A stretch of 64,000 bases of DNA from Antechinus flavipes (taxonomy: Eukaryota), in contig NC_067399.1 in assembly GCF_016432865.1 (NCBI RefSeq), positions 614,234,001 through 614,298,000 on the forward strand, read 5' to 3'. The notes below the pieces were generated by a model. The model was not told where the DNA came from. It made no database searches and saw only the letters and a list, made by a program, of their open reading frames with translations. Positions 25,550-55,292 of this stretch are shown in pieces. Each line of letters opens with the position of its first letter. The stretch's first letter is position 1. The translations under genes were made by a program, and so were the position numbers.

Positions 25550-26546
25550 CCAGCCTTAGTTCTCAGTCCCTCTTTCTCCACCCGCGGCGTCCTCTCGGTC
25601 CCCTTCCTTGCTCGCTGTCCGTTTCAGGTCCCTGCAAGCGCCCTGCCCATTCCCCCGTGCTTTCCCCCTTTGCAGAGTAGGGCCTTTGTGGCCGTGGAAA
25701 ACCTGGAAACTCGCGGGGAGCTGGTGGGAGGAGGACGGGAGAAGGCAGCACTCAGCCAATCAGTGACCCCGGAGCAGCCGTGTCCCCTCCCCCTCCCGGG
25801 GCCAGAGACCGGAAAACGCGCTCTGCAAACCCCTCCCCCTTCGAGCTTCGATTCCTCCACTCTAGGAGGGGGGCAGGAGGGGAAGTTCGGCCTATCCGGG
25901 GGTGGGGGTGGGGGTGGGGGTCGTGCCCCAGAATCTCAGGGTCTCCTGCAGGCAGCCCCGGGGCAGCGGAACTTGTCTGGCTCCCAGACCGCAGCCCCGG
26001 AGGGGAGGGGGAAGCAGCGAGATGTTCGCAGAGGTCTGCGCCCAGAGAGGCGGGGGTCTGGGTTTGAAGCCCAGCCTGGCAGCCGTTTTGCTGTTTGCTG
26101 CTCCATAAAATGACCGAGTCGGGCTAAGAGATCTCCAAGTTCGCTCCCAGCTTTCTCCCGTAGATCGCCCTCGGCCAAAGCTTCCCTCCTGCCTCTGTGG
26201 ACCCTGGGGTCAGGGGGGGCCGCAGCAAATTTTTAACTAGAACCATTGATTATTAACAAGAGGAGAAAGCCCAGGCTTGCCTCCTGGGCAAGGGCAGAGA
26301 GCGGCCAAGTCTGCTTCCGAGGGATTATGCTGGCACCCCGAGTCTGGTCCTCTGTGAGGCTGGGGGCAAGGGGGCTGGGCGGATGCCTGGCGCGGGGCCT
26401 GACGGGCTGGGCCTCCGCAGAGGGCAGGAAGGTGGACATCGGGGGCATCTACCCTCCGGTGACCACCCCCTTCACGGCCACCGCGGAGGTGGACTATGGG
26501 AAGCTGGAGGAGAACCTGTACAAACTTGGCACCATCCCCTTCAGAG
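25550..26546 (+). promoter_or_regulatory. HOGA1: HOGA1 GC/CpG-rich promoter and first exon region; CCAAT 25756-25760; HNF1-like ATTGATTATTAAC 26245-26257
   Basis: Visible GC/CpG enrichment upstream of ATG 26327; 11/13 match to GTTAATNATTAAC. Confidence 0.6.
26327..26546 (+). CDS. HOGA1: HOGA1 exon 1 (mitochondrial targeting peptide + start of DHDPS-like aldolase)
   Basis: [16 protein letters not shown]...[40 protein letters not shown]|gtaagg, 220 nt. Confidence 0.95.
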
Positions 26547-28272
26547 GTAAGGTGGCTCCTGGAAGGGGCGAGGGGGGCCGCACAGAGCCCTGGAAGACCT
26601 TCGGCCTTGGATCTAACTCCAGCTGCGTTACTCGGCACCGAGTCACTTGTCTTTCCCAAGTTTCCTCCTCCACGAAACGGGCAGGCTGCGCTCCTTCCGG
26701 TTCTGAGAGTCAGTGGTTGGTGGGGAGCGGGGGTGCTCCTCAGGATGAATGACAGCGGTCGGCATCCTTGCAGCCCAGAGCAGTCCTCCCCGAGGGGAGG
26801 CGGCCAGCCCTCTCCAGAGATGGAGAATGGCTTTGTTACTTTGTGTGAACAACGGGACGCAATCCCCCCAAAGCCTGACCTCTGAATTCCTGACAGGCCC
26901 TTTCTGAAACTCCTCTGAAGGGGGATCCGTCTGTCTTATCTCTCAGTCTCTACCTCCATCCGATCGAGCACTCCCAGGATCTGAGTAAGAATTTTCAGGC
27001 TAACAAATTCTTCCTCTCCTTCCCTATTAAGGACCCTCCTCCAGGAAAGGGACTGTCTTGCTTTTCTATCCCCAGTACTTAAGTTACCTGGCACACAGCA
27101 GGTGCTTAATAAATGCCGATTGACCGACTCTGCAATTGACTACTTTGGCCCCCTCATTTACTTACTCTTGACTGGCTTTGCTTTTTTCTCATCTTTCCTG
27201 ACCAATATTTAGAGAAGATCCTCTTGAGAAGTCTGATAAGACAACAGTATCTTATCATCACTACTACTAGTACAAACACAGCAGTGTCTTACTGGGTGAT
27301 TTTCACAGCCCCCACTCACCCTTCTGGAGATCCTTAGTTCTCTGGACCCCCTGGGGGTAGATAATACCCTGTAGAATTTTCCTTTCCATGGAGTCCTTGT
27401 CTGCTACTGTGGCCACTTGCTGAAGAGGGACGTCCATCTAAGAGGAAGATGCATCATGGACCAAATTTGGCCATGAGATCTATGGGCCCTTCTTAGAAGG
27501 CACAAAGTGAAACATATAGGATTGCAAAGGAAGCCAATTATATTGAAATCTAGTTATCAGAAATGTCTCTTTTTGTAAAGCCTCTGGCCTTAAGACCTCC
27601 CAAGCCAGAGAGGAACCCCGGGTAGCACCAGCCTTGGGGGTGCAGTGCACCTGACACCTATTTCATCGCCATTGGTGGGAGTACTTGGTGTTTGTAGCAG
27701 CACCGGGCCAGTGGTTGAGGTGTAGTTGCCCAAGTCGACTCCATCCTTACTCCAGCTGAGGAATAGTCTTTAAGGGGACAGAGAAGAGCAGGCTGGGAAA
27801 TGGCCAGGATGGGAAACTTCCCTCCTATTGTCTTATTCCACAAAGTGGTAGATCCAAGCCCAACAGTTTCTAACAGAACATGGCGGCTTGCTCCCCTCAT
27901 GAGACCTAACCACCCTTTTAGAGGCAGCAGATCATTAACACTTCCATTAAAAAAAATCAAGCTTGACAACTTAGGGAGGGCCTCTGGGAAGTGAATTTTG
28001 TACAAGCAGGAAATGTCCATTAAGAGCGCGAGTCCAGTGCTGGTTTAGGGCACACAAGCTCTTAGTGTGGACTTTGCTTCCAGGAGTTACTGGACAGAGA
28101 GAATGCGTAACTGGCAGCAGGCACCCCCTTGTCCAGAAGTTCTATTCCCCACCTACATTAAGAAACATGAAGATGAATGAGGGCACTGATTAACTCAGAG
28201 GTGTGGAAAAATCCATTGAGATCAGGGCAAGACACAGTGGGATCACCTTCCTGCCTCTTCCTCTCACTTCAG

Positions 28273-28907: not shown

Positions 28908-29965
28908 TCCCCCCCCCGGAATTGCATCCCCAGGATGCAGGACACAGAGACCTCAGGAAGATGTCACATTTGAGCTGAGGCTCCCCTTGGTCAGGACTTT
29001 GTCCATCAGACTGCAGCGGGGCTTCTCAAATGGGTCTGACCAGTTGCCCTGTTTTAGTCTGAGGGAGGCTATTTTGTTCCTCTTCTTTAAAACTTTTTTG
29101 GTTGCCTCATCAGAGGTAAGGCACTAGCACTTTTGGTTTGTTTTTGTTTTTTTTTTTTTTTTGTTGCTGGATTGGGTTAACCAGGACCACGTAGCTAGTC
29201 ATTGTCCAGCGACACATTTGAAGTCATGTCCTCCTGTCCTGACCTGAGAGCCGATGCTCTATCCCCCCAGCTGCCCCTAGAAGAGATTTATTTAAAAAGA
29301 TAAGATTTTAGGTGACATTAAAGCTAGGGAGTCCAGGAAGTAGAAAAGAGGAAGAAAAATCATTACAAGCATGGAGCACAGCAGTGAAAAAGCCCATAGT
29401 AGGGACCTTAGACATTTTTCCAGGGCCTCCATTCCTTTATCCATAAAAAGTGGGGTATGGAGAGAAGGCTCCCGACTTCTGGGCTCCCTTCTGGCCCTAT
29501 GACACTGAGGAATAAAAAGTACTCATTTTACAGAGACAAAGCTTTCATGGGATCATAGAAGGGAACTGGAAAAAGTCATCTGATCCACCCCCACTCCCCA
29601 CCTTTTACACATAAGGAGACAGCCCCCCAGCAGTGAGAGATGATTAAGGTCATAAAGACAGAATGGGGGATTTGAATCCAGGTTGAATCCATCTGACTCC
29701 CAATCCAGCAAACTCTCTATAGTCCATGATCTCAGGGTAGGAGGAGTGAGCCCTGGAAGTAAGACGGGTAGCAATCTCTGCTAATAGGAAAAGAGCATCA
29801 TTAGTCTTTGTGAAACTGGGGACATGGCCGGCCTGATTTTCTTGAGGTTAGAAAGCAAAAATTCTCAAGAATGCAAAACTGGCAGCAGCTGGAGAGTCCC
29901 AGGGTGGTTTTTAATATGTTCAGTGAGAGCTGGACATAAAGCCTAATACTTCCCCACCCCCACCC

Positions 29966-31680: not shown

Positions 31681-32059
31681 GGCCTCTGCTTGCGCCATAG
31701 CCTGAACCGTGCGCAGAACCAGGAGGAGGCCGAGCTCGTGCTGGCGGCAGGCTGGGCTGGGAGACCCTCCAGGGGTCTGAGGAGAGCAGTCTGGCTGGGA
31801 CCCCAGATCCCCCTCCCTGGTTGGGTGCTCCAGCCCTGCCAGACCCCCCAAGCCCGCCGGGGCCCACCTGCCCACCCCTCCCAGCTGTCTCCCTCATAAT
31901 GGGCTTCATTGCTGAGGCAGGGGAGGGGCCTTCCCCAGGGGGTGAAGGAGCAGGGTTCTGGCCCGCAGACACCCTCTGGGGTGCCTTCCAGCATGAGCCA
32001 GCTTACCTGGGCACCCCATTCCCTCTCCTGCCTCATTTCCCCATGCTCTCTCCTCTCAG

Positions 32060-32821
32060 GCTGATCGGCTCAGGGTCCTGGAGAGCCTGGGAGTGCTAAT
32101 CCAGCAGCCATCATGCAAGGTGGTGCTGGCAGTCAGCCTGCTGCTGGGGGCTGGGGGGCTCTACCTCTGGTTCCAGGGGAAGAAGAAGACCCTTAAGAAG
32201 TCTCCAGCATGTAAGAAAGAATCCGCAGTGTCCGCTGCCATAGAGAATAAGAGCGATCCCTGGATCAAGTCCCACTTCAGCCGGCTCTCGGATGAGAAGC
32301 TGTGCGCGCTGCTGCAGGAGGGCGGCAGTGGGGAGGCGGGCTCCGCGCACACCAACATGCAGGTGGAGACGTGCACCTCGAGGATCCGCGAGGGCAAGAA
32401 CGCCGACATCCGCAAGGAGGCCTACATCACCCGGCAGAGGACCTCCGGGAGCAAGGTCTTCAAGGAGTGCCACAAGGAGTCCTCCAAGTCCAACGCGGCG
32501 GACGAGACGGCCTGGGCCTCGGTGGCCTCCTGCGTGCACGAGATTGACCTCACCGGCCGCCAGCTGGCCGACTCCATGCTGCAGCGGGCCGCCCGCTACC
32601 AGCACTCCGGGCACCTGGAGACCAAGGACATCAACAAGGAGGAGCTGAAGGCCTTGGAGGAGGTGGAGATGAAGGTCAAGGGCAATTTCCTGACCCGCTG
32701 GGAAAGCAACATGGCCGGCTCGAGCAACACCTACCACAACCATGGCTACCACAGCCAGCCCCCCCACAGTCAGCCCCCCCGCGGCCGCCAGGCCTCCCAC
32801 GCCTACTTTAACCTCACCTAG
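32060..32821 (+). CDS. C10orf62: C10orf62 ortholog, main coding exon nested in HOGA1 intron 1; start codon unresolved
   Basis: Open frame from a strong acceptor (ctctctcctctcag|GCT) to TAG 32819-32821; motifs WIKSHFSRLSDEKL and TAWASVASCVHEIDLTGRQLADSMLQRAARYQHSGHLETKDINKEELKALEEVEMK match remembered human C10orf62; syntenic position. Confidence 0.85.
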   Translation, partial: ADRLRVLESLGVLIQQPSCKVVLAVSLLLGAGGLYLWFQGKKKTLKKSPACKKESAVSAAIENKSDPWIKSHFSRLSDEKLCALLQEGGSGEAGSAHTNMQVETCTSRIREGKNADIRKEAYITRQRTSGSKVFKECHKESSKSNAADETAWASVASCVHEIDLTGRQLADSMLQRAARYQHSGHLETKDINKEELKALEEVEMKVKGNFLTRWESNMAGSSNTYHNHGYHSQPPHSQPPRGRQASHAYFNLT

Positions 32822-33108: not shown

Positions 33109-33114
33109 AATAAA
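33109..33114 (+). terminator. C10orf62: C10orf62 polyadenylation signal AATAAA (inside HOGA1 intron 1, same strand)
   Basis: AATAAA about 290 nt after the stop; ATTAAA also at 33076-33081. Confidence 0.7.
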
Positions 33115-36320: not shown

Positions 36321-36451
36321 NNNNNNNNNNNNNNNNNNNNNNNNNNNNNNNNNNNNNNNNNNNNNNNNNNNNNNNNNNNNNNNNNNNNNNNNNNNNNNNN
36401 NNNNNNNNNNNNNNNNNNNNNNNNNNNNNNNNNNNNNNNNNNNNNNNNNNN
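36321..36451. other. Assembly gap (131 N)
   Basis: Direct reading. Confidence 1.
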
Positions 36452-54628: not shown

Positions 54629-55292
54629 GGGTGATGGCGCCCCCTCCCGGCGCTCGGAGGGTGGATGATGGCGCCTGGGGTGATGGCGCAGCCTCCCCAA
54701 CCTCCCTGCAATCGGAGGGTGGATGATGGCGCCCCCTCCCGGCGCTCGGAGGGTGGGTGATGGCGCAGCTTCCCCAACCTCCCCGCAATCGGAGGGTGGA
54801 TGATGGCGCCCCCTCCCGGCGCTCGGAGGGTGGATGGTGGCGCCTGGGGTGATGGCGCAGCCTCCCCAACCTCCCTGCAATCGGAGGGTGGATGATGGCG
54901 CCCCCTCCTGGCGCTCGGAGGGTGGGTGATGGCGCAGCTTCCCCAACCTCCCCGCAATCGGAGGGTGGATGATGGCGCCACCTCCTGGCGCTCGGAGGGT
55001 GGATGATGGTGCCTGGGGTGATGGCGCAGCCTCCCCAACCTCCCTGCAATCGGAGGGTGGATGATGGCGCCCCCTCCTGGCGCTCGGAGGGTGGGTGATG
55101 GCGCAGCCTCCCCAACCTCCCTGCAATCGGAGGGTGGATGATGGCGCCCCCTCCTGGCGCTCGGAGGGTGTGTGATGGCGCAGCCTCCCCAACCTCCCCG
55201 CAATCGGAGGGTGGATGATGGTGCCTGGGGTGATGGCGCAGCCTCCCCAACCTCCCCGCAATTGGAGGGTGGATGATGGCGCCCCCTCCCCG
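54629..55292 (+). repeat. Composite minisatellite: 20 cores GGGTG(GRT)GATGGCGC with three spacer types and a 169-bp higher-order unit
   Basis: Hand parse: ABCAC x3 then ACBCA; first A spacer at 54641, corresponding one in the next unit at 54810. Confidence 0.95.

Follow-up and report, generated by a model that had tools for sequence, protein, structure and literature searches.

A 64,000-nt stretch of the Antechinus flavipes genome (hereafter the window) contains a single coding exon of the dasyurid orthologue of C10orf62 and, with it, a simple question: where does translation of this protein begin? The human gene is reported to be testis-restricted and to encode a protein of 223 residues with unknown function (PMC4144267). 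An earlier note on the window had drawn attention to a hydrophobic segment near the 5' end of the reading frame and had proposed that marsupials make a membrane-anchored form of the protein that eutherians truncated. Below we follow the frame from its anatomy, through the conservation of the hydrophobic segment, to the competing candidates for a start codon.

A C10orf62 coding exon without a local in-frame AUG

The anatomy of the exon can be read directly. On the forward strand, to which the gene features described here belong, the main frame is closed upstream by a TGA at 31994-31996, which echidna shares in the same CAGCATGAGCC context, is open from 31997, and ends with a TAG at 32819-32821; an AATAAA at 33109-33114 is, from its sequence only, the likely polyadenylation signal. 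The first in-frame ATG (32357-32359, encoding MQVETC) lies 3' of the conserved WIKSHFSRL motif (32261-32287) and is also where a 149-aa devil model in GenBank, KAM9062995.1, begins. Both the upstream stop and the late position of this ATG had been described in the earlier note and are confirmed in the sequence, as are the hydrophobic stretch, the basic residues (GKKKTLKK) that follow it and the lack of any local in-frame ATG. The missing ATG is not an assembly slip, since the independently assembled Tasmanian devil genome, with two differences in 31865-32176, agrees in having the same stop and no ATG.

The identity of the gene is clear from three sides. A profile search matches Pfam DUF5569 (PF17729) at 32165-32773 with an E-value of 8.5e-63 and 212.7 bits against a cut-off of 37, covering profile positions 2-214 of 225, that is, essentially the full-length C10orf62/DUF5569 domain. 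Identity to named orthologues is 44-77% overall and 69-77% for marsupial proteins named 'C10orf62 homolog', and at a threshold of at least 90% identity the frame clusters with Tasmanian devil proteins. Finally, the position is orthologous: C10orf62 is nested in the HOGA1 intron that follows exon 1 (26327-26546, donor G|GTAAGG, phase 1), on the same strand and downstream of ANKRD2, and the same nesting is found in devil, Dromiciops, Tamandua, echidna and leopard. In these five loci the called genes include ANKRD2, HOGA1 (DHDPS) and, nested in it, the gene for DUF5569.

Because profile position 2 falls on LWFQ (32165), the hydrophobic stretch is located before the curated domain, on its N-terminal side. 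According to the earlier note, the human protein starts MLWVQRKRRRK and aligns to YLWFQGKKK. Curated C10orf62, as represented by the PF17729 profile and the short protein models, thus starts at the end of the hydrophobic helix and leaves outside both the helix and a flank running from V-L-E to P-S-C; in the window, no AUG precedes this helix and flank.

The hydrophobic helix and its conservation

The segment upstream of the curated domain comprises a conserved 15-residue N-flank (VLESLGVLIQQPSCK, 32075-32119) with an invariant P-S-C, an 18-residue hydrophobic, transmembrane-like helix (VVLAVSLLLGAGGLYLWF, 32120-32173) and a polybasic C-terminal flank, QGKKKTLKK (32174-32200). Several properties bear out the earlier description of a transmembrane-like segment. 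The Kyte-Doolittle 19-residue mean is 1.79 in the window and 1.61-2.01 in 23 of 23 orthologues, reaching the transmembrane threshold throughout, and the maximum elsewhere in the protein is 0.41. On the Hessa scale, insertion is marginal, with a sum of -0.29 over the 18 residues and a range from -1.4 to +0.6 across the 23 orthologues. The C-flank carries a net charge of +5 in 10 residues in the window (+4 to +8 in 23 of 23 sequences) and the N-flank one of -1 to +2 in the same sequences, a charge asymmetry that agrees with the positive-inside rule. An AlphaFold2 model built on the 23 orthologues has a low mean pLDDT of 58, and its most confident element is a helix spanning residues 12-41, with pLDDT values of 79-90. 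Foldseek found no match to this low-confidence model in the PDB.

Helix and basic flank are present in seven marsupial models, 15 eutherian models and the echidna frame. Across this 23-sequence alignment the invariant residues are P12, S13, C14, L18, L24, G25, G27, L31 and W32, and the density of invariant residues in the helix region equals that in the rest of the protein. The comparison set was assembled without the human sequence and without unlabelled Logan/ENA/JGI/MetaClust proteins.

To gauge selection we calculated Nei-Gojobori (NG86) omega, over short segments, for six genomes (window, devil, Dromiciops, Tamandua, leopard and echidna). For 32075-32176, from V-L-E through the helix, omega is 0.12-0.14 within marsupials, with 7-8 synonymous and three nonsynonymous differences between dasyurids and Dromiciops, and 0.22-0.31 between marsupials and eutherians. 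The two alternative frames of this stretch fare worse than the main frame in marsupials; between Tamandua and leopard, the main frame has no clear advantage over frame +1 in the helix region. Immediately upstream, in the 26 codons before V-L-E (31997-32074, hereafter segment A), the main frame is open and unconstrained: omega is ~1 (1.09 for window-Dromiciops, 1.01 for window-Tamandua and 1.13 for Tamandua-leopard), and the 23% divergence from Dromiciops is near-neutral. Coding constraint therefore sets in sharply at V-L-E (32075), 15 residues before the helix. The extension is, in sum, kept in the marsupials, eutherians and echidna and evolves under constraint, and we regard it as highly probable that the helix is translated and pan-mammalian.

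Might the upstream frame nonetheless be a relic in the species at hand? Suppose that dasyurids had lost their start codon and that only the 149-aa product from the ATG at 32357 were still made, as the GenBank devil model would have it, with the frame upstream decaying. We would not then expect what the two dasyurids display: five synonymous and no nonsynonymous differences between window and devil in 32075-32260, and no indels or stops over 360 nt of the main frame, in a neighbourhood where the flanks differ by ~8.7%. Such a product would, moreover, go without the family core WIKSHFSRL. We consider this scenario very improbable.

A different possibility is the one raised in the earlier note, namely that the membrane-anchored form is marsupial or ancestral and that eutherians truncated it, through the Met of the MLW start, into a soluble protein. 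This would fit ~20 non-human eutherian models that, like the 223-aa human annotation, begin with MLW or MMW followed by basic residues, and also the Tamandua-leopard comparison, where the helix region gives no clear sign of selection specific to one frame. However, the helix, the P-S-C motif and the basic flank are kept in every eutherian genome or long model examined, and the omega against marsupials given above is low. In the alignment, the Met of the MLW start falls on a marsupial Y or C inside the helix; judged from these sequences, the short models begin at a Met that occupies one of the hydrophobic positions of the helix. Twelve eutherians have V, I or L in place of that Met (Tupaia, Tenrec, Octodon, Sciurus carolinensis, Castor, Ictidomys, Sturnira, Manis, Acomys, Miniopterus, Erinaceus and Pteronotus), and their NCBI models begin further upstream and take in the helix. 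Furthermore, short and long models coexist in different databases within a single genus, in Panthera as in Sciurus, which suggests a choice of annotation rather than a difference in biology. Since eutherian models and the echidna frame encode the same helix and basic flank, truncation in eutherians is not supported and appears improbable to us. What survives of the original proposal is a constrained, transmembrane-like helix; what does not is its restriction to marsupials, of which the helix is no novelty. What emerges goes beyond the original claim: a helix common to the mammals checked precedes the annotated short start, with no conserved AUG before it.

Candidate start codons

If the helix is translated, from which codon? 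The class to which this locus would belong, conserved non-AUG-initiated N-terminal extensions of mammalian proteins, has been defined by comparative genomics. C10orf62 resembles its members in several respects: purifying selection acts upstream of the first in-frame AUG, with an upstream stop and no AUG in between; the constrained region has at its 5' border a conserved CUG in good context; and the extension bears an element of targeting type. No in-frame AUG is found in the local frame of window, devil or Dromiciops, and the first AUG of the echidna frame falls inside the helix. At the edge of constraint, the Leu of V-L-E is encoded by CTG (32078-32080, G at -3 and G at +4) in six of six genomes (window, devil, Dromiciops, Tamandua, leopard and echidna); GTC CTG GAG is invariant in the five therian genomes, all of which have this context, and echidna has C at -3. 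The earlier note had favoured a second CTG, at 32087-32089, as an alternative to an AUG. Its good context (A at -3, G at +4) is as described, and the idea of a non-AUG start has moved from alternative to leading candidate; the codon itself is less well conserved than CTG 32078, occurring in the three marsupial genomes only. In Castor and Miniopterus, the protein models have an AUG one or two codons before V/A-L-E, suggesting that an N-terminus at V-L-E is tolerated.

Two features set the locus apart from other non-AUG extensions: dasyurids would have no AUG-initiated isoform that contains the WIKSHFSRL core, and several out-of-frame AUGs lie near the CUGs, at 31899 (in strong context), 31993, 32043 and 32113. 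Should the transcript start upstream of 31899, these four AUGs would make CUG initiation inefficient. In addition, the conservation of CTG 32078 is spread over few independent lineages, about four, and could reflect mere codon usage. A search for stimulatory RNA structure downstream of the CUGs found none (z = -0.21), an Rfam search gave no hits, and none of 11 papers that mention C10orf62 places the gene in the context of non-AUG-initiated extensions.

The out-of-frame AUG at 31899, whose context has A at -3 and G at +4, opens a 66-codon ORF (MGFIAE..., 31899-32099, ending with TAA at 32097-32099) in frame main+1. Could this be the real start, joined to the main frame by a -1 frameshift within 31997-32099 or by removal of an 83-nt GC-AG intron (31991-32073)? 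Six mammals have kept the ATG in its strong context, and in dasyurids and echidna a -1 step leads from the ORF to the main frame. The T TTC CCC at 32036-32042 formally fits the slippery pattern X XXY YYZ, conservation of the leader between the two dasyurids is extreme, and a wombat model has an 83-nt intron. Yet the relation between the two frames is not stable: the ORF is in main+1 in dasyurids and echidna, in main+2 in Dromiciops, continuous with the main frame in Tamandua and limited to 11 codons in leopard. ATG 31899 therefore serves neither as a conserved N-terminus nor as a conserved partner for frameshifting. The heptamer departs from the canonical form and is not kept in Dromiciops, so that neither the conserved frame relation nor the canonical heptamer of programmed -1 frameshifting is found here; the GC donor (cca|GCATGA) scores poorly, and the stretch of overlap is neutral in the main frame. 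We give this reading very little credence.

The surroundings of ATG 31899 are of interest in their own right. Between window and devil there is one difference in the 210 nt of 31865-32074, compared to 8.7% divergence in the flanks (P ~1e-7) and 3.9% in the rest of the ORF (P = 0.002). Against Dromiciops, the sole part of this stretch still conserved is an island at 31865-31996, upstream of the main frame, with 10.7% divergence as opposed to 24-37% in its flanks. The island holds a motif, ctca(c/t)aATGG, that echidna shares with three marsupials and two eutherians; since its reading frame varies between species, it is not conserved as protein. As a guess, the island might be a promoter, a 5' leader or the start of an upstream ORF.

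Another out-of-frame ATG, at 32113-32115, begins a 27-codon ORF within the 22-nt block CCATCATGCAAGGTGGTGCTGG (32108-32129), which is identical at all synonymous sites in five therian genomes; the ATG is also present in echidna. A test for synonymous constraint on the helix block is suggestive only (Fisher P = 0.064), and the ORF, with omega above 1, is not conserved as protein. We also considered a +1 shift at the stop of this ORF and rejected it, given that the stop is absent in devil and omega in that frame is above 1.

The main rival to a CUG start is more conventional: an ordinary AUG in a 5' exon, possibly lineage-specific, that is spliced to an acceptor just upstream of the constrained region. 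There are two acceptor-like sites. A pyrimidine tract at 32039-32059, with 89% pyrimidines in the 19 bases that precede the junction, ends in AG at 32058-32059 and would open a phase 0 exon at 32060; the Gnomon model of Trichosurus uses this strong acceptor with a 175-nt intron. A second AG, at 32072-32073, would open an exon at 32074, immediately before constraint begins; the Dromiciops model splices to it, and the wombat model, with its 83-nt intron, implies the same site. Gnomon models of Trichosurus, Dromiciops, Petaurus and Notamacropus all include an upstream exon; Gnomon draws on cross-species protein alignments, however, and these models are therefore not mutually independent. Neither acceptor is general, the first AG being AA in Dromiciops and the second absent in Tamandua.

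The proposed exons also differ between species. For devil alone there are four incompatible models: NCBI's XP_023350540.2 is labelled 'partial' and has no start, an older model starts from a mini-exon encoding 'MAVGSP', the Ensembl model removes the helix as part of a 116-nt GC-AG 'intron', and the GenBank model begins, as noted, at ATG 32357. The other marsupial models (n = 5) have five different starting peptides, and NCBI marks the Tupaia and Sturnira models, along with that of devil, as partial. Two of the proposed exons, when located in the window, turn out to be unusable. The homologue of the 'MAVGSP' mini-exon (27880-27906) has lost its donor (GT to AT), and we rejected it as a start. 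The same applies to the 'MIFSG' first exon of Dromiciops and Petaurus: the window has no copy encoding that peptide, and the homologue (29726-29740) reads ATG ATC TCA GGG TAG and thus runs into a stop codon, with a donor that has changed from GT to GG. The Dromiciops Gnomon first exon as a whole (L002:9887-10032, corresponding to 29683-29821 of the window) starts at the 3' edge of a MIR-like SINE, whose core, GTTAAGTGACTTGCCCAGGGTCACACAGC, has many copies within the window.

A chimera of HOGA1 exon 1 and C10orf62 was likewise discarded, because exon 1 ends in phase 1 and would keep the frame with none but weak acceptors. A canonical GT-AG solution with good sites does not exist locally, and enumerating combinations of ATG, donor and acceptor proved uninformative: 636 in-frame combinations arise by chance, so that any one solution proves nothing. 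On balance we think of a 5' exon as a possible, though not a probable, explanation. Were it true, C10orf62 would have an ordinary two-exon structure, and the absence of an ATG would be a gap in annotation.

With no in-frame AUG at the edge of constraint and the upstream exons dead in the window, translation most likely starts from a near-cognate CUG, decoded as Met, either at 32078 or, in marsupials, at 32087. This is our best guess as to the initiation codon, and a tentative one, held with distinctly less than even confidence. For the combination of a C10orf62 orthologue, a pan-mammalian signal-anchor-like helix and a near-cognate CUG start, we would put the chances slightly below even.

Possible membrane anchoring and neighbouring features

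What might the helix do? Taken together, the hydrophobic stretch and the polybasic flank would form a translated, N-terminal, signal-anchor-like helix common to the mammals checked. From the distribution of charges one would predict that the short N-terminus crosses the membrane and that the DUF5569 body stays in the cytosol, with an anchor in the style of ER type III or of the mitochondrial outer membrane; both insertion and topology are deduced here from sequence properties. The tail in front of the helix would measure 13-15 residues with a CUG start, a length that would suit a signal anchor, and would be longer with an upstream AUG. Mitochondrial outer-membrane signal anchors combine moderate hydrophobicity with a net positive charge within ~5 residues after the helix, and the helix of C10orf62, with a Hessa sum of ~0 and the +3 carried by the five residues of QGKKK, fits this description. 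Anchors of the Tom20/Tom70 type, or of the ER type-III/P450 type, share with C10orf62 one helix near the N-terminus that contains Gly and is moderately hydrophobic, a Lys/Arg cluster no more than five residues after it and a bulk that is C-terminal; they differ in having no sequence homology to C10orf62. Hydrophobicity alone cannot tell ER from mitochondrial targeting. A mitochondrial outer-membrane anchor is a plausible analogy.

If the conserved helix is the real N-terminus, C10orf62 would be membrane-tethered, the short reference models would miss its targeting element, and its function might be sought in the sperm mitochondrial sheath or in ER or acrosome membranes. One may go further and suppose that, throughout mammals, a membrane-anchored C10orf62, possibly a spermatid protein of the mitochondrial outer membrane, starts at the CUG for the Leu of V-L-E, downstream of a conserved upstream AUG in strong context. 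We consider this extended version doubtful, though worth stating: if it were true, the short models, including the human one of 223 aa, would begin inside the helix and be N-terminally truncated. The starts that annotation pipelines assign to this gene are mutually incompatible, and constraint begins without a conserved AUG, which recommends C10orf62 as a locus for testing non-AUG initiation in spermatids.

A few further observations concern sequence composition. In the gene body (32261-32821), synonymous divergence from Dromiciops is saturated, with differences at 92 of 120 synonymous sites, and it is low at the 5' end. The body of dasyurid C10orf62 is also extremely GC3-rich, which may be due to GC-biased gene conversion; a similar signature had been seen in ANKRD2 by the author of the earlier note. 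Elsewhere in the window, a run of 131 N at 36321-36451 marks an assembly gap or a masked stretch, and a tandem repeat (minisatellite) at 54630-55290 produces serial tblastn matches of the type LPAIGGWMM.
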